Shown here one piece after another: positions 328 through 22,339 of a stretch of 64,000 bases of DNA (position 1 is the stretch's first letter; each line of letters begins with the position of its first letter). A program made the position numbers and the translations under genes. The stretch lies in the NCBI GenBank assembly GCA_965603825.1, contig CBFDEM010000004.1, positions 930,001-994,000 of the forward strand, in the 5' to 3' direction. Source of the stretch: Blepharisma stoltei ATCC 30299 (lineage: Eukaryota > Protista > Ciliophora). The notes under the pieces were generated by a model. It was given only the letters and a program-made list of their open reading frames with translations. It was not told the origin of the DNA and did no database searches.

Positions 328-2850
<2,523 letters not shown>

Positions 2851-2879
2851 TTATTTAAGTTAAATCTCTATTAAACCAA

Positions 2880-4235
2880 TTAACTTCTTCTATTCCTCGG
2901 GCTATCTGACATTGCGAAATATTGGTTTACCGTCGAGTTTACCTGGACCCTCATTTCTTCTTTCATTTCTCTGTTCATCCACATCCTATAGAATACAGCA
3001 ATTGCGCCTATAAGCGCAAAGGACAAAATTAGTATAAAAATTATGGTAGAGTTAGAAGATTCTGCTTTTTCTGGGGACTGGTCTTGGCTACAGAGATCAG
3101 GCTCTTGGTAAGCCCCGTAGCCTGCACATAAAGCTTTTAGTATAGCAGAGGATTCCCAGTCGCCTCGGTAGGTAAAATTATTTACTATAAGGGCTGGGTA
3201 AAAGGACAGACCAAGCTTACCCCATGTGTTGAATTCGTCACGGAGTAGGGTGTTGTCGTCTAAAATTGGCCTTTTATTGCCAATAAAGCTGTCGTCCATG
3301 CATTTTTTGATTTTTTTGTGGTCAATTCCGGCGTCTTTTAGGAATTTTTCTGTGCAGGCTTCCATGTCTTCGCAGGTTGTATTGTAGGATTTCATGTATT
3401 TAAACCAGAGAGAGTAGTCTTGATCGTTTTCTGTTTGCTTGTAGATACAAATCTGCCTTAAATTTTCAATCACGACGTCTCTGCCTGTCCTAGGGCCATT
3501 TCCATCAGGATCTGGGGCACAGTATCTTCCTCCGCTTACACAGTTTGAATTGTCACTAGTAAAGCCATGGTTAGCACAATCGTCACAGTACCAAAGTACA
3601 TAATGCGGCACAAATGTGGCTTGTTTTTTGGTCAATTTCGCTCCAACATTATAAAACTGATGCAAAAAATTCTGAATTTTTACGTTTTCTGAGGACATCC
3701 AAATATCATAATTTATATGTCCATCACGATAAGGAACCTCAAAAGAAAGCATCAAGGACACAGCTTCTTTCTTTTCCTCCAAATACAATTTTAATAAATT
3801 TCCATCAGACTCAGATATAAGTAAAGTAGGTATATAAATATTCCCACCAGTTCCTGAATCAATCATAATCACATTTTCAGGGTTTTCTTCTCTGTTATCG
3901 ATCACTATCAACGCTTTAGCTCCAATATCTTGGGCATGTCTAGCTTTAACTACAAATGGGCAATCTCCTCGTTCTACAAGCAAAATTGGCGAATTTATAG
4001 ACTCTTCATCATTCCAATTGAAAGGGGTGATGGCATCACATGCAAGCTTTTCAGCTTCTCGGTAAAAAACACGTCCTACAATAGAAGATCCATAGGGAGG
4101 ATTTCCAAAATTAGCCAATGAGCTTTTAAGTCCACTGTGAGAATAACGATTTCTGACAGCTTCTTTTAGTTCAGCAGGGGCATATACGAGAATTTTGCAG
4201 AAAGCTACACTTATAAGGAGAAATAAAAAATACAT
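2880..4235 (-). CDS. Vacuolar sorting receptor-like type I membrane protein (PA domain), 451 aa
   Basis: Signal peptide; ANFGNPPYG; LVERGDCPFVVKARHAQ (PA domain); GGRYCAPDPD; DVVIENLRQICI; one TM; cytosolic YFAM (YxxPhi) motif; no EGF repeats. Confidence 0.88.
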   Translation of the reverse strand: MYFLFLLISVAFCKILVYAPAELKEAVRNRYSHSGLKSSLANFGNPPYGSSIVGRVFYREAEKLACDAITPFNWNDEESINSPILLVERGDCPFVVKARHAQDIGAKALIVIDNREENPENVIMIDSGTGGNIYIPTLLISESDGNLLKLYLEEKKEAVSLMLSFEVPYRDGHINYDIWMSSENVKIQNFLHQFYNVGAKLTKKQATFVPHYVLWYCDDCANHGFTSDNSNCVSGGRYCAPDPDGNGPRTGRDVVIENLRQICIYKQTENDQDYSLWFKYMKSYNTTCEDMEACTEKFLKDAGIDHKKIKKCMDDSFIGNKRPILDDNTLLRDEFNTWGKLGLSFYPALIVNNFTYRGDWESSAILKALCAGYGAYQEPDLCSQDQSPEKAESSNSTIIFILILSFALIGAIAVFYRMWMNREMKEEMRVQVNSTVNQYFAMSDSPRNRRS

Positions 4236-4247
4236 TTTATTATAAAA

Positions 4248-4670
4248 ATGAGCTCAGATGATGTGGGAGTAAGACTATCACAAAAATTATTACAAGGATG
4301 GTGCATGCTTAATAAAAATTGTGAAGAATGCTATACTCCAATAATGAAAAAAGACAATAAAGAATACTGCTGTGGCTGTCAGAGGTTTCTTGAAGAAGAA
4401 AAAAAGTCTGAGCCTACACAAGTCATAGAAAAGCCAGAAATCAGTCACAAAAATGATACACATAACCAAGAGGACAATAAAACCCCAGAAATCACCGATT
4501 CTACAAGTATATATCACGATTTTCCAGACATAAAAACAGTCAGAGAAAATATCTTTAATAAAATGCTAGAACTTTCTAACCATTTGCCAAGAATAAAAGA
4601 CTATTCAGAAATCTCAAAACTCTTAAAAATGATCAGTGACTGTGACTCCCTCTTACGGCAGCTTAAATAA
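4248..4670 (+). CDS. ZNRD2: SSSCA1/ZNRD2-like zinc-ribbon protein, 140 aa
   Basis: LSQKLLQGWCMLNKNCEECYTPIM...YCCGC matches the Auto_anti-p27 domain pattern. Confidence 0.8.
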   Translation: MSSDDVGVRLSQKLLQGWCMLNKNCEECYTPIMKKDNKEYCCGCQRFLEEEKKSEPTQVIEKPEISHKNDTHNQEDNKTPEITDSTSIYHDFPDIKTVRENIFNKMLELSNHLPRIKDYSEISKLLKMISDCDSLLRQLK

Positions 4671-4695
4671 CCCTTCTAATTATCCTTAATTAATC

Positions 4696-5331
4696 CTAAT
4701 AAAACACAAACTGCTCATCCCAGCCTTTTTCCATAGCCTTATTTTTCCTTATCCTCCCTGACCTCCTCACTTTTTCCATCTCAATTTTTACCTCCACATT
4801 TTTACCTGAAATTCTTTTTTTGACAATAATTTCTTCAATTTTTTCATTTTTTGAAGCTTTTTTCATTTCTTCAGCCTGTAGCATTTGTTTTGTTTTGGAT
4901 TTTTTTTTAATGCACTTTTTGCAGAACCATTCTTCAAGGATAGGAATATGGCTTAAATTTATGCAGGAAATATGGAAACCTTTATTGCAGGAGTCACAGA
5001 GGAGTAAGTTTTCTTCGTCATTAGAAAGGTGGCAGATCTGGCAGGCAAGGTCACGGTAGGGATCGTCAATGGCGCCATCTGATTGGTCTTTGTCTTCTAC
5101 AAAAAATAATTTAAAGGAGGAAAGATTGATATAGGAATGGTATCTTTCGTTGCAAAGAGGGCATTTATTTGTGATCTCTGATCATCGAGTTATACAGATA
5201 ATGCAAAATTGATTGTGACCACAGGTATCGAGGGAGACTTTTATTAAATTTTCTAATGGTTCTAAACATATGAGGCATCTGTCTTTTTGAGCATTGATAG
5301 CTATTTTTCTGGAATTCCGGGTTTTACGCAT
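4696..5331 (-). CDS. RING plus PHD finger protein (PHRF1/Asr1-like), 211 aa; mostly missed by the ORF track
   Basis: With TGA=Trp (5182-5184): CLICLE..TCGHNQFCIICITRWSEITNKCPLC (RING), then CQIC..LLLCDSCNKGFHISC..EEWFCKKC (PHD), in frame with the 4696..4884 ORF. Confidence 0.88.
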
Positions 5332-5514
5332 AATTGATTATTTATAAGCCCCCGATGATTAAAATCCTATATAAATATTATTTAAATAAATCATAATTTT
5401 CTATAAGAATTGCACTTTTTCTATTATTTTTAATCAAAATTCTTGAAAATTAAGCCAGAAATGATTTTCACATAGGATTTTCGTTAGTTTTCTCTGTATC
5501 AATGTGGATAAAAA

Positions 5515-6771
5515 ATGCTCACAGGTTTAGGTCGCAGATTTTTTCGAAGGTCTTTGATTCTAAACAGACTAGAAACCTTCATGATTCCTCAGCCTGGCGA
5601 AGGCATTGCTGAGGTTGAAATCCAGCACTGGCTTATAAAACCTGGAGAGGCAGTCAAAGAATTCCAAGTTTTGTGTGAAGCAAGAAGTGACAAAGGATTT
5701 ATTGAATATAAAAGCCCTTTTGATGGGACAATTAAGGAGTATTTTTTCAATGCAAACCAAATGGCACCGATTGGGTCACCTTTATTTAAAATAGAAATTG
5801 ATGATGGGAAATATCCAATTAAAGGACAAGCAAAAAAAGTGGAAGAAAGTAGTGGGGAAGCTGCTAACGAAAACGTGGCAAAAGAATCGGGCAGCAAAGC
5901 TTCGAAAATACTAGCAACTCCATCTGTGAGGCATCTTGCGAAGCAAAAAGGAATTGATATATCAACTATACCGTCAACTGGAAGAGATGGGAGAGTTCTC
6001 AAAGAAGATTTATTAAGATATTTAGAAGAACCTTCCCATGTAAGCCCACCAGTAAGACCTCAAATTGCAGTCGAAGCCCAAGATAAAGTATCAAAACTCT
6101 CTGGTCTCCAAAAAGGCATGTGCAAAACAATGACAGAAGCTTTACTATTTCCTCATTTAACTTATTGTGAGGACGTTTATATGGACACACTAATAGAGCT
6201 CAGAAAAATGATAAAAACGACCCTGACTGATGTGAAGCTCACATTTATGCCATTCTTCATAAAAGCTTTATCTCTTGCAATCTACGATTTTCCAATAGTA
6301 AACGCCAGCTTTATTAATAATAACACTGAGTTTGTTATGAAAGCTTCTCATAATGTAAGCGTCGCAATGGACAGCAGAGCAGGACTGCTTGTCCCGAATA
6401 TTAAAAATTGCCAGAATTTGTCAATCTATGAAATTGCAGTAGAAATGGCAAGACTGCAGGACTTAGGGACAAAAGGAAAAATTGGGCAAAGCGATTTGGA
6501 AGGAGGGACTATTTGTTTATCAAATATTGGGTCAATTGGTGGGACTTATACAGCTCCAGTAATTTTGCCTCCTCAAGTATTAATTGGAGGCTTAGGAGCT
6601 ATTAGACCTCGACTTGAGAAAAAGAAAGGAGAAATCGTTGAAAGACAAGTTTTAGGCTCTTCCTGGTCAGCTGATCATAGACTGCTAGATGGCGCAACTG
6701 TAGCAAAGTTTGTCGCAAGATGGAAAGAACTTTTAGAAAATCCTTCATTGATGCTCTTGCATCTTAAATAA
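5515..6771 (+). CDS. DBT: Branched-chain alpha-keto acid dehydrogenase E2 (dihydrolipoamide acyltransferase), mitochondrial, 418 aa
   Basis: Transit peptide; lipoyl domain (EARSDK); E3-binding domain (ATPSVRHLA..GRDGRVLKED); catalytic WSADHR. Confidence 0.9.
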   Translation: MLTGLGRRFFRRSLILNRLETFMIPQPGEGIAEVEIQHWLIKPGEAVKEFQVLCEARSDKGFIEYKSPFDGTIKEYFFNANQMAPIGSPLFKIEIDDGKYPIKGQAKKVEESSGEAANENVAKESGSKASKILATPSVRHLAKQKGIDISTIPSTGRDGRVLKEDLLRYLEEPSHVSPPVRPQIAVEAQDKVSKLSGLQKGMCKTMTEALLFPHLTYCEDVYMDTLIELRKMIKTTLTDVKLTFMPFFIKALSLAIYDFPIVNASFINNNTEFVMKASHNVSVAMDSRAGLLVPNIKNCQNLSIYEIAVEMARLQDLGTKGKIGQSDLEGGTICLSNIGSIGGTYTAPVILPPQVLIGGLGAIRPRLEKKKGEIVERQVLGSSWSADHRLLDGATVAKFVARWKELLENPSLMLLHLK

Positions 6772-7576
6772 AATATGAGAATAATTATTATTCTAATAAA
6801 TCTCCATTTCTTCACCTGCTTTATTTTTCAACAATATCAAACATATCCAAAAATCCAATAATGATAGGAATCTACAGAAAAATAAGCAGAGATAGCTAAA
6901 TCTATTTTTATTAGATTTTTAGATTATTTTTTAAGAATACAAGTATTAATGCTGATCTTTCAGGCTATAAATAGGAAATTATAGAAATGAAATTAACTTT
7001 TAAGTTTTTGATACCATTAATTTGAAATACAATTATGATTGAGAAATTATTGAAACTCATTTGACCCAAAAATTGGATTTGCAAATTATCAATTATTACT
7101 AATAAAACTTCCAGAATCAAATTCTCGAAAAAAAAATTAAAACACAGCAAATATCTTTTGAAATAAAATCAGCTGCCTTAAAATAACCCGCCAATCTAAT
7201 TCAATCACACTTTTGAGCGTAATAGCCCACTAATCCACATATTTTTTTCAATCTGACCAATAAAGAAAACATCAAAATTCTCTTGATTTTCCTAACTTTA
7301 TATAATAATTTATTACCTTCAGCCGATCCTTTCCTAAGCCAACTCTTTTGGCTTGCTACGCATATGAGCTTTTTTAAATTTAAAATTGCCCCTTTTAAGT
7401 AATATATTTTTCTATTTTTACCCCGAAACCATGCTGCCAAAACCCCTCCACAAAACTTCTTAAAATTCTTGGTTGATTATAAATACCCAAACAAATTATA
7501 ATGAAAACACCAAATAGGTTAGAATTAGATTATGACATACTTGATCAGCTTTATAAATCTGAACTAAAAACCTAAA

Positions 7577-9359
7577 ATGCAATCATCAAATATTCTTTCT
7601 CATATTCTATCCTATCTAACCTATCAAGAATTGCTGGCATGTAGCTGTCTTAACAAACATTTTCAAGCCCTTTGCAATAACACATTTTTATGGCGTCGAG
7701 AAGCACTAAGAATCGGCATAGGAAATCTTGAGCTATTTGGCGAACCTTTGTTAGGCATTCAAAATTCACAAAAGTCTTCGTCGTCATCAAAATGGAAAGA
7801 GCTGCTGAGAGGACTCATTGAATCTAAAAAATATTGGCCAACAGATCATTCTGTTCTGGAGCCTTCAGACACCAATAATTTGGTTAAAGAATTTTTAAGT
7901 ATATTGAGAGAGCCTCAGATGCCTCCTCCGACGTTAAGAAGAGAATCCAAATGTCTGCCAACAATCTTCCAAGAATTGCTAACATATTACCTTATTGATG
8001 AATCGCCAGCAGCCTTGCCAAGTTTTGATGACTTTATGACTGAAGACATACTTGCAAAGCTTTTTGACTGGTCAGAAAGGCTAGAAAATGAGGTATGGGA
8101 TATTTAGTTCAAAGGCTCTGTAGAAAAAAACCAATTTACTATAGCAAGGTGGGCATTGAAAGATCCAAAATTTGATTCATGGACTTTAAGCCCTTTCAGG
8201 CTGTCTATAGAGTCTACAACTGATACTTATGATCAAGAAGACGACCTTTGCCAGCTTAGTCAAAAATTTCCTTTAAAAAATTCATCCCCATTCCTAATCA
8301 AACTTTATTACGCTATTAAGAAAACTTCATCAGTTCACAGTAAACTTATCCTTGCCTCAATTCTTGAAAATGAAGATGACCTAAGCCTTTGTAATGATTA
8401 TATCACAAAAGTAACCTTTAATTCAGTGAAACTCCTATTGCGCTTCCATCAAAGAACTCAACCAAAAATACCAAGCCTTCTGTACCCTTTTCAACGAAAT
8501 CTTCAACAAAACCCACGAAAAGACTCCAAATTTCCCTCCCTTTTCTCTGCTGAGGCCTATGGTTTTTCAATGGAAACGAAAAGTCTTTGAAACGGTAAAG
8601 GATAAATTAATTAATACAGCTTTGGACTTGTTAAATAAGTGAAGAAGTGACCAAATTGATGAAGAGTTGAGTTATCTTCTAATAAAAATCGTTCAAGCAT
8701 TAATTGACCATAGCGTTAATGAGTTGAATGTGCGTTTTCTTGATCATTCTCAGTTCTATACTGATGGAATCTATGAAATTTTACATCAAAAAACGGTTGT
8801 TGCAACTTTAGAATACTATAAAACCCTTAAAAATTTGCCGGCTGATAAGCTTTCAGAAGCTTTGGAGAAGGACATGAATATTATTCAAAGGGTTTTTCTT
8901 AAAAGGACACAAATTGAAATAGAGAAAATAAGAAATGAAATAGAAATTTCTGCTTGGAAAAGCTGTTTTTGTGAGAGCTATAAAGAGTTTAAAGCAGGAA
9001 TTTGTTGTGTAAATTCAAATGTGACCGAAAATTTACTTGATAGTGAGTTTGGGAGGATTCTTTTCAATGTGGATTTTAATAAAAACAGGATAAGGCAGTT
9101 TATTGAAACTCTTCAGTGGAGAAATGATAAAATGGTTGAAAATATTCAGCATTTTTTGAAGTTGGTAATAATAACATAGTTTGAACGTAAAGTTGAGCTT
9201 CAAGAAAAACTGATTGATGATTTAATTATTGAAGAGGAAAACGAACAGTGCGGCTTTATGCTTGAACAAAGTCCTGAAGAAAGGATTCTTTTTTCACTAA
9301 CCAATGATATTAGTCCCCAGCAGTTCATGGGAATTGTGATCAATACGGATTTATTGTAA
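7577..9359 (+). CDS. F-box protein with cullin-repeat-like domain, ~578 aa, three tiny introns
   Basis: N-terminal F-box (ILSHILSYL..QELLACSCLNKHF..LW). Introns 8093-8107, 8411-8426 and 9165-9179 plus two TGA=Trp join three ORF fragments into one frame ending TAA at 9359. Confidence 0.8.
8093..8107 (+). other. 15-nt spliceosomal intron
   Basis: GTATGGGATATTTAG; removal restores the frame. Confidence 0.85.
8411..8426 (+). other. 16-nt spliceosomal intron
   Basis: GTAACCTTTAATTCAG; removal shifts into the cullin-like frame. Confidence 0.85.
9165..9179 (+). other. 15-nt spliceosomal intron
   Basis: GTAATAATAACATAG; an open frame follows to TAA at 9359. Confidence 0.75.
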
Positions 9360-17764: not shown

Positions 17765-19318
17765 ATGGGAATTAGAGAGGACTATAAAAAGTGGCCTATT
17801 AGAAGGCAGCTTCAAACTACTTTTATTACAACAGCTTTGATTATTGTTGGGGTACTGATCACTATAACCCAATTCCAATTAGATTGATTACGAGACAAAA
17901 TGACGGACAAATCTGACTCAGTCACACAAGACGCTTTGAATAATCATATAAGCATTTTAGGACAAGAAATGGCTTCTTATGTGCAAACGGAGTTTGCAGG
18001 CTACATTAAATTTATATCAATTTTTAAAGATTTAGAGTTACTTATATTGGGCCACAATCAATACTCATCTCCACCTATTGTCCCAAGCTCTCCTGTATGG
18101 CATGATAATATTCCTTCATCAATAGAAGTATTAGAGGACGGGATATATGTAACTTACAATACAGGCGTTTTTTATTCCAGATATGCCTCTTCATTAAGCA
18201 CAGATGGCGAAACTTTAGTAGCTATGGATGCGGCAATGGACAAGCTTTACCCTAAAATGTTTATGGAAATGTTTGATTCTATATATGCTGGATTTGAGAC
18301 TGACGAAATTCTTCATTTTTACCCTGGGTATAAATTCAATGTAACAGATTATTCACCTTTGACGCGAGAATGGTATTATAAAGCCCATGATAATTCAAGC
18401 TGAGCAGCCATTACCCAGCCTTATCAAGATGCAGGTTCTCTTAAATGGATGTTCACGATTTCTCAAGCAATTGTCATTGATAATGCAGTTTATGGTGTCG
18501 TGGCTGCTGATATTTTATTAACTACAATTACTGAAAAAATAAATAGTGTAGTGATCCTTGACAGCGGATTTTTGCTATTAGTTTCTAATGAAGGACTTGT
18601 AATTAGCAAGCCTGCCTCTTGGAAAAATATGGGAGACCCTTTAAGAATTTATGAGGAATCCAAAACAGGGATTTCAGAAACTCAATGAAATTCTTTTATA
18701 GAAGGAAGTTCAACAGATATCCAAAAATTCACAGACATTAATGGCACTGAGTACCATATGACGGTATCCAAAGTCACTCCATATGAAAATCTATCAAATA
18801 TCACCCACTATCTCTGTACTTGTGTAAAGCAAAAAGAAGCTTATAAACCTATATCAGACATGAAAGACAACTTTAGAGATACTTATGATGCTATTTTTTG
18901 GGTCATAGTTGCTATTGCGATTGTTACATTTGTGATCACGCTCGTTTTGATTTATTTTGCTACTAAAAACCTTAGTAGAGATCTTAAAGAATTTGAGCTA
19001 CTTTTTTTGAAAATCGTAAATAGAGGACTTTTCCCAGATATGACCAAAAAAATCAGCTTGGAAAGAATTCAAAAAGCAAGGGATTTTATGCCAACTCTGG
19101 TGGATGGGTGTGAAAAATATATAGATAATTTAAAAAATAAGGAAGAAGAATTTTCGTTTTTTGAGTGGGGAGATACAAGGCCATGTGATAGATTTTTATA
19201 TGAAAATTGATGTAACAAGATTTATCCTTTTAATCTTTATAATAGCAAAGAAATGAGCTGGAGATTTATTATCCCGAAATTGGAAATTATATCAAATTCG
19301 TTTAATTTATTCAAGTAA
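17765..19318 (+). CDS. TM-dCache_1-TM membrane sensor-like protein, paralog 1, 517 aa
   Basis: Single frame with TGA=Trp at 17885, 18401, 18686 and 19208; YSPLTREWYY..PYQD..GVVAAD Cache motif; two TM helices; collinear with paralog 2. Confidence 0.88.
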
Positions 19319-19369
19319 AAAAATTAAAAATAAGACAAATAACACCTTATAAAACTGTCATTATAAAAC

Positions 19370-20932
19370 ATGGGATTCATGGACAGGTTCAACAAATGGA
19401 CTATGCGGCAGCAGCTGCAAGTCGCATTCGTGGTCACCTCCTTTCTGCTAGTTGGCATTCTTATTTTAATTACAAGGCTGCAGCTCGATTGGCTTAAAAA
19501 TCAGATGATCGATAGATCTGATACAGTCGTCATAGACTCTTTACGAGACCAAATGCGTGACCTCGGCAGAGAAAAAGCAGCTTTTATAGAGCGAGAATTA
19601 GAAAATACAATGAATTACGTCAAAGTTCTAAGAGATATCGATATGATTCTTCTAGGCTTCAATAGTTATACAAAGGCTCCAATTGCTTTGACTGCGACCG
19701 AAACAGGAGTATGAAATTATGATATTCCTGCATCTCAGATTGTAGATGTCAATGGGACGTCCTATACCTATGCTACTGGTGTTTTTCTATCAAAATACTC
19801 TGATGATATGAGCACTGAAGGAACAGCTCTAATGAAAGCCCAACATGCCATGGACAAAATTTTCCCTCACATATGAAGAACAGAGTACTCAGGAATTTAC
19901 TTTGGATTTGAAATTGAAGAGCTCTTCCATTACTACCCAGGCTATAAAAACTCTGACCAAAGCTACACCCCACTGGTAAGAGAATGGTACTATAAAGCAG
20001 CCAATAAAACGGACGGGTCCGTTATTATAACAGAGCCATATACAGACGCTGATTCTGGTGTATGGATGATTACGTCATCTTGTGCACTTATAGTAAATAG
20101 CTCAGTCTATGGGGTAGCAGGCGCAGATTTAAGCTTGGCTTATTTGTCGACTGAAATAAATAATGTAGTTATATTAGACAGCGGCTTTATGATGCTGGTT
20201 TCTTCTGAAGGGATGATTATTTGTATGCCAGACTCTTGGTCATATTTAGGGACATCTATAAGAATTTATGACGAAACTAAGACTGGGATCAGTCTGAATA
20301 CTTGGAATTCACTGATTTCAGGGTCTGATGATGAACTTCAGACTTTTTATGATATTAATGGGACTGAGTATTATACAATTGTAACTCCTGTTATACCTGA
20401 AGGGTTTACGAAAGCGTCGCATTATTTATTAACTTGTGCATATCGTACGGAGGCGAGAGAGCCAATTTCCCATATGAAAGATAAATATGATACTACGTAT
20501 TGGACTATTTTTTGGATTGTTATTGCTATCGCTATTATCACATTTTTAATTATCGTCGTTTTAATTTATTTCGTAACCCGAAAAGTCAGCTCCCAGCTCA
20601 AAGAAATTGAACGAGTTTTTACTAAACTGACTCATAGAGGACTTTTCCCTGACATAACTAAAGGAATTAATCTTGAAAAAATAGAAAAAGCCGAAAGCTC
20701 TATGCCGGGGCTGGTCCAAGCCTGCATACAAAAAATTGACTCAATTCAGAAAAAAGAAGAATCGTTTTATTTCTTCGAGTGGGGGTCAACCAGACCATCT
20801 GATGAGCTGATTTTTGAAGACTGGTGCAGCAAGATTTATCCGTTTAACTTGTATCATGATAAGGATATGTCGTGGAGAGCTACAATTCCGAACCTCACAA
20901 AGGTGGTGGCGAATAAACCAACTAATAAGTAA
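19370..20932 (+). CDS. TM-dCache_1-TM membrane sensor-like protein, paralog 2, 520 aa
   Basis: Single frame with TGA=Trp at 19712 and 19874; YTPLVREWYY..EPYTD..GVAGAD; two TM helices. Confidence 0.88.
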
Positions 20933-20988
20933 GAATATAATGATTTAATATCATGCTGGTAAAATCTGGATAAAAGTATTTATCATAA

Positions 20989-21447
20989 TTAGTTATTTTG
21001 GTTAGCTTTTTTCGATAGGGTTAGATTTATAAACTCACGAAATTGATGTAAAAGCAAGTCTCTAATCGATCCTAAGACTTTTCTAAATGACGTAGATCCT
21101 AGGTCAAATATAAACGCTATCCCTTTGTCTATGCTTTCTTGATAAGTTTCCAAGAATGGGCCTAAGCAAGAATCATATATTAGCCCAGCTCCTCCAAAAA
21201 CACTCAAAAATACAAAAAGTGCAAATCTTCCGATATAAAATGCAGGGATTTTTAAAAGCAGCGATTCGAACAAGTACTCAAACAATAAAAGCAAAGACCG
21301 AACTATCCAAAACTTATGCCAGAAATCAAGTGAGCCTGTAGCTTCTGTTTCTTTATAAGCTTTCAGTGATGAGTATGCTGGATAAAAGTCAGCTGCAATA
21401 AAACTATTTGGGATTTACTATAAAAATATCATCAAGGTGTCCAACAT
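20989..21447 (-). CDS. TB2/DP1/HVA22 (REEP)-family protein, 147 aa, one intron
   Basis: FYPAYSSLKA..WHKFWIV..GGAGLIYD..LGPFL; intron 21404-21418. Confidence 0.8.
21404..21418 (-). other. 15-nt spliceosomal intron
   Basis: GTAAATCCCAAATAG on the minus strand. Confidence 0.8.
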
Positions 21448-21520: not shown

Positions 21521-22339
21521 ATGGCTGAAAAGGTCCTTAATAAGCTAGGCACATTAGGAGGTTTATTACTTTTGTCAAGTTTTGGAATAAACAAGTTCTG
21601 CTACTTTGTTGATGGTGGCGAACGAGCTTTGGTGTTTGACAGATTCAAAGGTATTAAGCCTGACGTGTTCGGAGAAGGAATTCACTTTATGGTCCCGTTT
21701 ATCCAATGGCCTATCTTTTTTGAGATCCGTACAACAGCTAAAACCATCAACTCCAAGACAGGTACAAAGGATCTGCAAATGGTTAACATTGACCTCAGAT
21801 TTTTGTATAGACCTGACCCAGCATATCTCCCATCAATTTACCTTAATTTGGGAAAAGATTACGATGAGCGTGTCTTACCATCTATTGGAAATGAAGTTTT
21901 AAAGTCCATTGTGGCCCAATACAACGCAGAACAGCTTCTTACCCAAAGAGAACAAGTTTCACACGAAATCAGAGAAAGACTTACACAAAGAGCTAACGAG
22001 TTCCATATAGTCCTTGATGATGTCGCTATCACACACTTGAACTTTGGGCCTGAATTTACAGCTGCTTGCGAGCAAAAACAAGTCGCTCAACAAGACGCTG
22101 AAAGAGCCAAATTCTTGGTCATGAAAAGAGAACAGGAAAGAAAAGCTGCAATTATAAGGGCTGAAGGAGAAGCTGACGCTGCGAGACTTGTGTCAGAAGC
22201 CATTAAGACTCACGGAAGTGGACTTTTAGAAATCAGAAGAATTGAAGCAGCGAAAAATATTGCAGGAAGCTTGTCGAAGGCACCAAATATTACATATTTG
22301 CCAGGTGGGAATGCAAATCTTCTTAATATTCCAGTTTAA
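21521..22339 (+). CDS. PHB1: Prohibitin 1, 272 aa
   Basis: VDGGERA..FDRF; TKDLQMVNI; DYDERVLPSIGNEVLK; EQKQVAQQDAERA. Confidence 0.95.
   Translation: MAEKVLNKLGTLGGLLLLSSFGINKFCYFVDGGERALVFDRFKGIKPDVFGEGIHFMVPFIQWPIFFEIRTTAKTINSKTGTKDLQMVNIDLRFLYRPDPAYLPSIYLNLGKDYDERVLPSIGNEVLKSIVAQYNAEQLLTQREQVSHEIRERLTQRANEFHIVLDDVAITHLNFGPEFTAACEQKQVAQQDAERAKFLVMKREQERKAAIIRAEGEADAARLVSEAIKTHGSGLLEIRRIEAAKNIAGSLSKAPNITYLPGGNANLLNIPV

Follow-up and report, generated by a model that had tools for sequence, protein, structure and literature searches.

Two adjacent genes of the ciliate Blepharisma stoltei encode predicted VWA-less dCache_1 receptors with a family-specific cytoplasmic tail

The 64,000-nucleotide stretch of DNA analysed here (positions 930,001 to 994,000 of contig CBFDEM010000004.1, Blepharisma stoltei ATCC 30299, assembly GCA_965603825.1; referred to below as the window) carries two adjacent genes, gene 1 and gene 2, which encode predicted two-pass membrane receptors. 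Each has an uninterrupted dCache_1 sensor domain with a complete amino-acid-binding motif between two transmembrane (TM) helices, followed by a cytoplasmic tail that appears to be a new output module. Although dCache_1AA sensors themselves are already known, a eukaryotic VWA-less receptor of this class joined to such a module would be new. We propose, with a probability of roughly two in three, that both proteins are sensors of amino-acid-type ligands that signal through the tail; the ligand class, the dimeric signalling and the docking of an effector are the parts of this proposal that we infer. The family to which the two proteins belong, called family A here, is best read as a receptor family of heterotrich ciliates, and the genes in the window as separately transcribed tandem paralogs.

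Gene pair and reading frames

The original prediction, made from the letters of the window alone, described two collinear paralogs 51 bp apart that are whole only if TGA is read as tryptophan, and both open reading frames (17765-19318 and 19370-20932) were found accordingly, neither of them containing introns (Table 1). Gene 1 has four in-frame TGA codons (codons 41, 213, 308 and 482) and gene 2 has two (115 and 169). Opposite four of these six codons the other copy carries the tryptophan codon TGG, which confirms both a code with UGA as tryptophan and the reality of the two reading frames. The hydropathy analysis agreed with the layout that had been proposed, namely a short N-terminus, a first TM helix (TM1), a double-Cache-like region, a second TM helix (TM2) and a tail: in both proteins a basic N-terminus of about 17 amino acids (aa) precedes TM1, the ectodomain comprises about 340 aa, and the tail comprises 119 aa. 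Most N-glycosylation sequons fall within the stretch enclosed by TM1 and TM2. Over their whole length the two proteins share 47% identity, and the tail (52%) and TM2 (64%) are better conserved between them than the ectodomain (44%).

Sensor domain

Pieces between in-frame TGA codons were used as queries in the sequence searches. The gathering cut-off of the Pfam dCache_1 family (PF02743) is 45 bits. Residues 170-520 of gene 2 gave 52 bits with dCache_1 and 42 bits with MCP-like_PDC_1, and a 94-aa piece of gene 1 gave 39 and 30 bits, respectively. In a six-frame search of the genome dCache_1 scored 56.4 bits for each of the two genes, so that both pass the cut-off and the assignment of the domain, which had been proposed from the motif, is upheld by the Pfam profile.

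The solved structures found by sequence were bacterial sensors. When gene 2 was searched as a single sequence against the PDB, the best matches were Mlp24 (3c8c), Mlp37, PctA, PctB, PctC and CtaA with E values of about 1e-11, and CACHD1 appeared with an E value of 7e-4. A profile of 37 family members gave 57-70 bits for the McpC-like 7w0w, the proline-binding cyclase 7k5n, CtaA, PctA-C and Mlp24/37, 45.6 bits for CACHD1, and about 15 bits for alpha2delta-1. No match to VWA or VWA_N was found in the pair with Pfam, and the two halves of the ligand-binding motif are contiguous, without an insert. The claim of a VWA-less protein with the bacterial TM1-sensor-TM2 topology was supported by the lack of a VWA match and by the distance of 15-16 residues between the motif halves.

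Amino-acid motif and candidate ligands

In PctA numbering, the dCache_1AA motif consists of Y121, R126 and W128, which serve the ligand's carboxyl group, and of Y144 and D173, which serve its amino group (Gumerov et al. 2022, PMC8915833). The R126A mutant of PctA has a 61-fold lower affinity and D173A abolishes binding, and the halves of the motif are 13-17 residues apart in prokaryotes (PMC8915833). All five residues are present in gene 1 (Y196, R201, W203, Y220 and D249) as well as in gene 2 (Y199, R204, W206, Y224 and D253), and the spacing of the halves, 15 residues from Y204 to Y220 in gene 1 and 16 residues from Y207 to Y224 in gene 2, has the prokaryotic form. In the HMMER alignments the Arg, the Trp, the next Tyr (PctA Y129), the Tyr of TEPY and the last Asp match their counterparts in the solved sensors; the motif's first Tyr stands opposite a Trp in Mlp24 and a Phe in 7k5n. 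The strings on which the original prediction was built (YSPLTREWY, PYQD and VAAD in gene 1; YTPLVREWY, PYTD and AGAD in gene 2) are all present, and the pattern Y-x4-R-x-W-Y...P-Y-x-D...D is retained at every position in both genes.

Throughout the family, 52 of 55 members keep the motif Arg and Trp, and 33 of 55 keep all seven positions that were examined. B. stoltei itself has five close family-A paralogs, i.e. the window pair and the copies on contigs 13, 30 and 11. Among these the Arg is kept only in the window pair and is replaced by Q, N and E on contigs 13, 30 and 11, respectively, suggesting that the pockets of the three dispersed copies have probably changed ligand. These replacements also bear on the possibility that the ligand of the window pair is not an amino acid and that its pocket has shifted towards amines, purines, organic acids or small molecules of some other kind, a reading that partly overlaps with our own. 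Bacterial families derived from dCache_1AA bind amines or purines, according to two reports (10.1101/2023.04.06.535858, 10.1101/2023.10.26.564149). We nevertheless consider such a drift unlikely in the window pair, in which every motif position is kept, including the Arg and the final Asp, the residue whose mutation abolishes binding in PctA.

It is even harder to believe, and in our view very improbable, that one or both proteins are the receptor for the tryptophan-derived pheromone gamone 2 (blepharismone) in mating-type I cells. Blepharismone, which is a lactate derivative, is not known to have an alpha-amino group. The intact motif, however, specifies an alpha-amino together with an alpha-carboxyl group, and the family is equally expanded in Stentor, with at least seven genes, and in several other organisms. 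The idea draws on the facts that gamone receptors were still putative in 2024 (PMC10892320), that strain ATCC 30299 belongs to mating type 1, which is the type responding to gamone 2 (PMC9942806), and that L-Trp is bound by PctA, one of the close matches in structure (5t7m).

Predicted fold

The three-dimensional structure was modelled with AlphaFold2 (AF2), using a family alignment, for P0004, a full-length family member of 502 aa that has the same motif as gene 2. The mean predicted local distance difference test (pLDDT) value of the model was 81, and values above 90 were obtained through most of the ectodomain. In the model a long helix extends from TM1 into two PDC modules, and the helix of TM2 continues into the cytoplasm. 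The Cache fold that had been expected was thus recovered by structure prediction for this proxy, as a double PDC standing on a long N-terminal helix and followed by a TM helix. A Foldseek search of the PDB with this model placed full-length integrative models of the B. subtilis receptors McpB/McpC/YvaQ in the first two positions, and the best crystal structures were those of ligand-bound CtaA, PctA/B/C and Mlp24/37, with template-modelling scores of 0.7-0.82 by target. A shape search of the ESM Atlas with P0004 returned bacterial dCache_1-HAMP proteins with assorted outputs.

Cytoplasmic tail

The statement that the pair has no canonical output domain held as well: neither protein matches a kinase, a cyclase or the signalling domain of methyl-accepting chemotaxis proteins (MCPs). 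MCPsignal (PF00015) is absent from both proteins and from the whole genome, in a search whose control found this domain in 9 of 14 genomes. The tail's C-terminal part is instead a Trp-rich module of about 50 aa, with the family pattern WG-TRP-D ... W ... YP-N ... W, which in gene 1 takes the form FFEWG-TRP ... YPFNLY ... W (aa 465-499). In the family alignment E463, R475, P476, P491 and W502 (gene 2 numbering) are invariant, and W471 and W485 nearly so.

With a profile built from 14 family tails, a search of 1.84 billion protein representatives yielded 69 clusters, all of them either proteins of about 500 aa with this tail at the C-terminus or fragments. In the B. stoltei genome the profile matched exactly the five family-A genes, the tail of gene 1 with 112 bits; neither among the 1.84 billion representatives nor in this genome was the tail found in another protein context. 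Pfam gave no meaningful match on the tail, Foldseek found nothing in the PDB for the tail model at an E value of 0.001 or better, and a wide search with VIA-align returned only generic helical hairpins over residues 1-68, with Z of at most 8. When modelled alone with AF2, the tail has five helices (pLDDT 72), two of which span tail residues 2-21 and 44-65 and are joined by a connector. We conclude that the tail is, as far as its sequence indicates, a new and strongly conserved cytoplasmic module specific to the family.

The first half of the tail would form a helical hairpin in the position of a HAMP domain. A HAMP-like helix had been named in the original prediction, and this description was not supported. 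Only the helix-loop-helix shape and the position are compatible with it, the segment VTRKVSSQLKEIERVF standing immediately after TM2 of gene 2, whereas sequence comparison is not: HAMP (PF00672) had no Pfam match at E values up to 10 in the window tail, in P0002 or in the 14 family tails, and hhalign of the tail with the HAMP regions of seven bacterial MCPs gave a probability of 0.3%. With both Pfam and hhalign negative, membership of the tail in HAMP by sequence was rejected. By structure, HAMP-containing entries of the ESM Atlas align with P0004 through residue ~449. When the tail was searched by language-model features, HAMP clusters scored 0.90 and had 124 features in common with it, a borderline value that we regard as a lead only. 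The odds that the hairpin is a diverged HAMP domain are about even.

Family and origin of the pair

In a profile search of a large protein database, 56 family members reached at least 230 bits, and the next matches, set off from them by a gap, were bacterial MCPs with at most 61 bits. Names are attached only to members from Stentor coeruleus (at least seven genes) and Blepharisma, and family members bear the automatic UniProt name "Cache domain-containing protein". The database protein closest to gene 2, at 94% identity, comes from a Blepharisma transcript in MMETSP, and one paralog carries the name Blepharisma stoltei at NCBI. Three metagenomic members are located on gene-dense contigs with eukaryotic neighbours (among them Arf/Ras, CLN3, cyclin, EF-hand, PIP5K and mitochondrial carrier). 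One of these metagenome contigs, L021 (26% GC, UGA as tryptophan, eukaryotic neighbours), has four tandem family members at 2659-9198, two of which are nearly identical; tandem amplification thus recurs in this family. Another of the three contigs uses the standard genetic code. On L020, a metagenome contig of 49% GC, the N-terminal TM1 part of a family member (5719-7389) is found upstream of one in-frame TAA, which points to either a different genetic code, with TAA as a sense codon, or a short intron.

A quick maximum-likelihood tree with bacterial MCPs as its root groups gene 1, gene 2 and the contig-30 copy together (Shimodaira-Hasegawa-like approximate likelihood ratio test value of 94) and places the Stentor copies in several other lineages. 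From this grouping, the window pair is an old duplication within the Blepharisma lineage and not a conserved two-gene unit. With five close paralogs in this genome, at least seven in Stentor and four tandem copies in L021, the adjacency of gene 1 and gene 2 is explained by tandem duplication, and the pair is not special.

The same data are relevant to the suggestion that the adjacent genes encode two halves of one receptor, an obligate heterodimer. The 51-bp adjacency, the apparent transcription of both genes, and the full motif kept by both while the Arg is lost in the three dispersed paralogs are what one would expect of such a unit. Bacterial dCache receptors, however, are homodimers. Tandem arrays of four copies in L021 range from near-identical to divergent, and the contig k-mer depths of gene 1 and gene 2, poor measure though they are, differ about 5-10-fold in all four sequencing runs that cover the locus. 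An obligate heterodimer is accordingly quite improbable.

As to the deeper origin of the family, we can offer a tentative scenario, which we ourselves consider doubtful: heterotrichs would have acquired a bacterial amino-acid sensor separately, after the last common ancestor of eukaryotes (LECA), and rewired it through the new Trp-rich module. Family members would then be the amino-acid chemoreceptors that have long been sought in these ciliates, and the paralogs with altered pockets would be free for other ligands, blepharismone included.

Genomic context and transcription

The assembly comprises 41.46 Mb in 64 contigs and contains an SSU_rRNA_eukarya match of 1692 bits. The published macronuclear genome of B. 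stoltei ATCC 30299 has 41 Mbp, 66% AT, UGA as tryptophan and introns of 15-16 nt (PMC9942806). Bacterial contamination, or a bacterium using genetic code 4, was considered as a source of the locus and ruled out by the eukaryotic small-subunit rRNA, the eukaryotic neighbours and a 15-nt intron in a neighbouring gene.

The locus is covered by four sequencing runs of one study. The contigs of these runs stop at the gene borders (17785-19335 for gene 1 and 19363-20948 for gene 2), with no joint inside either gene, and gene 1 has a k-mer depth of about 10-19 in them, gene 2 one of 82-110, and the gene that follows one of about 2000. A stretch of 15 nt at window position 21404, in the neighbouring minus-strand gene (about 20967-21433), is missing from one contig. 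Contig ends at gene borders, depths that differ between neighbours, and the removal of a 15-nt intron make the transcription of both genes likely, though they do not show it. The 15-nt gap itself has the size of the tiny Blepharisma introns described in PMC9942806. Just downstream, a 272-aa open reading frame on the plus strand (21521-22339) has a contig k-mer depth of about 1700-2500 and is probably very highly expressed.

Table 1. Coordinates of the gene pair, of its parts and of related genes. Unless a locus or contig is given, positions are those of the window.
Feature	Position	Strand	Remarks
Gene 1, 517-aa two-pass receptor, family-A dCache_1	17765..19318	+	translated with UGA as Trp; stop TAA
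Gene 1 TM1, aa 18-35	17816..17869	+	hydropathy scan; preceded by basic cytosolic N-terminus
Gene 1 motif, N-terminal half, Y196-x4-R201-x-W203-Y204 (YSPLTREWY, aa 196-204)	18350..18376	+	aligns to R/W/Y of solved sensors
Gene 1 motif, C-terminal half, Y220, D222 ... D249 (PYQD, aa 219-222; VAAD, aa 246-249)	18416..18511	+	
Gene 1 TM2, aa 377-398	18893..18958	+	hydropathy
Gene 1 cytoplasmic tail, 119 aa, helical hairpin and Trp-rich C-terminal module	18959..19315	+	tail profile match
Intergenic spacer, 51 bp	19319..19369	.	contigs of each of the four runs end here
Gene 2, 520-aa two-pass receptor, family-A dCache_1	19370..20932	+	translated with UGA as Trp; stop TAA
Gene 2 TM1, aa 18-35	19421..19474	+	hydropathy
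Gene 2 motif, N-terminal half, Y199-x4-R204-x-W206-Y207 (YTPLVREWY, aa 199-207)	19964..19990	+	
Gene 2 motif, C-terminal half, Y224, D226 ... D253 (PYTD, aa 223-226; AGAD, aa 250-253)	20033..20128	+	
Gene 2 TM2, aa 380-401	20507..20572	+	hydropathy
Gene 2 cytoplasmic tail, aa 403-520	20576..20929	+	alignment, profile search
Family-A paralogs on contigs 13, 30 and 11	L011 1003-2544; L012 997-2547; L013		
Family-B gene	L014 955-2478	+	
Family-B gene	L015		
Family-B gene	L017 1687-3207	-	
Family-B gene	L018 1720-3324	-	
dCache-TPR-VWA gene, ~910 aa	C50:108000-114000 (L016), 1079-3805	-	
dCache-TPR-VWA gene, ~910 aa	C4:695126-697864		C-terminal part in L023:119-1366

Proposed function

From these results, a hypothesis regarding the mode of action may be put forward. 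Each protein would cross the membrane twice, with both ends in the cytoplasm and the dCache_1 domain exposed outside the cell, and its membrane-distal pocket, which carries the full motif, would most likely accommodate free amino acids or their close derivatives. By analogy with bacterial dCache receptors, the proteins would form dimers whose distal module binds the ligand; binding would displace the stalk helix and TM2 and so relay the change to the cytoplasm. The Trp-rich module most likely docks or regulates an effector, e.g. a channel, a cyclase or a kinase; the lack of a catalytic domain, together with a tail that is more conserved than the ectodomain, suggests such a docking or regulatory surface.

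Several points weigh against this proposal. In prokaryotes the motif is a good predictor of amino-acid binding (PMC8915833), but its validation does not extend to ciliates. The fold was obtained from the proxy P0004, which is 47-48% identical to gene 2, and from a partial piece. The tail matches neither a Pfam family nor a PDB fold and has no recognisable function, and its last 45 residues have pLDDT values below 50 in the full-length model. Finally, the record of the sequencing runs does not state that they are RNA.

A different reading of the missing enzymatic output domain would be that the proteins are ligand-modulated auxiliary subunits of a voltage-gated or other ion channel, in the manner of alpha2delta/CACHD1, with the ectodomain or the TM helices contacting the channel and the tail serving trafficking and not signalling. 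Ciliate chemoresponses are electrical. The only characterised eukaryotic dCache_1AA proteins act as channel subunits (PMC8915833), and the profile match to CACHD1, at 45.6 bits, is significant. On the other hand, the topology differs, there being two TM helices, no VWA and one dCache, and bacterial sensors are closer in sequence. VWA_N was not detected in the genome, although the control likewise found nothing anywhere, so that genome-wide absence is not established. That the cytoplasmic tail is strongly conserved favours a partner in the cytoplasm. An auxiliary channel subunit is therefore not a likely explanation, and we prefer that of a ligand sensor signalling through its tail.

If this preferred reading is right, the family would give a concrete candidate for amino-acid sensing in large ciliates, and the partner of the tail would reveal how a bacterial sensor became wired to eukaryotic signalling. 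In Stentor, where RNA interference works and at least seven members are present, the function is open to testing.

Other dCache proteins

The B. stoltei genome encodes a second, distant dCache family (family B) of about 505-534 aa, with members on contigs 24, 11, 45 and 18 and the same topology as family A. These proteins are 23-24% identical to gene 2 and score 35-43 bits with dCache_1. The motif Arg is replaced by Q on contigs 24 and 45, by E on contig 11 and by V on contig 18. In hhalign the segment following TM2 matched HAMP with 57.6% probability (E value 1e-4). The Trp-rich module is absent from family B, and a C-terminal motif YP-x-N-E-[LF]-[YF] is found about 25 residues from the end. 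Homology of this tail to that of family A was considered and could not be established, the weak local match at YP-x-N having a probability of 0.9% and an E value of 0.058.

Two further proteins of about 910 aa combine TM1, dCache_1, TM2, TPR repeats and a C-terminal VWA-like domain, which is presumably cytoplasmic; TPR_12 scored 30 bits, and VWA 16-18 bits, under the cut-off. The shape search of the ESM Atlas returned a cluster of 953-aa proteins from Thorarchaeota (Asgard) with the same Cache, TPR and VWA set. Proteins of this composition may bear on how dCache and VWA came together in eukaryotes. A feature search of the ESM Atlas with the proxy also listed eukaryotic clusters whose commonest source is Chytridiomycota (535 and 566 aa), and some members of these clusters carry MCP-like_PDC_1, HAMP and dCache_1. 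Chytrid fungi may thus have VWA-less dCache-HAMP proteins, a lead with no alignment behind it.

Comparison with known systems

In the literature searched, we found no Cache-domain receptor of ciliates or of Stentor, although the Stentor proteins may sit uncommented in Dataset S3 of Gumerov et al., and no amino-acid receptor of heterotrichs. The B. stoltei genome paper and its supplement (PMC9942806) do not mention Cache.

Proteins with dCache_1AA occur in most eukaryotic groups, including Stramenopiles, Alveolates and Rhizaria (SAR), and all eukaryotic dCache_1 proteins have been stated to contain an inserted VWA, the insertion being dated to about LECA (Gumerov et al. 2022, PMC8915833). With its uninterrupted dCache_1 and without VWA, the family described here contradicts that statement and, on the evidence of its members' sequences, is a clear exception to the rule.

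The window proteins share with alpha2delta/CACHD1 the eukaryotic host, an amino-acid motif in the distal module and the lack of an enzymatic output. They lack the VWA inserted in dCache_1, the nested double dCache_1 and the single-pass or GPI (glycosylphosphatidylinositol)-anchored topology; the difference in VWA insert and topology from the animal proteins that had been foreseen is thus seen in the contiguous motif halves and the two TM helices. With the bacterial dCache_1AA sensors (PctA/B/C, CtaA, Mlp24/Mlp37 and McpC) they have in common the order TM1-dCache_1-TM2, an uninterrupted double-PDC fold, the identical motif at prokaryotic spacing and a predicted helix-loop-helix directly after TM2. 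Unlike these sensors, they come from a eukaryotic host with eukaryotic neighbour genes, and they have no MCP signalling, kinase, GGDEF, SpoIIE or HD output and no HAMP detectable by sequence, but end in a Trp-rich tail instead. Consequently, the window proteins belong neither to the MCP or, by sequence, the HAMP family nor to alpha2delta/CACHD1, and combine the sensor of the bacterial receptors with a tail of their own.

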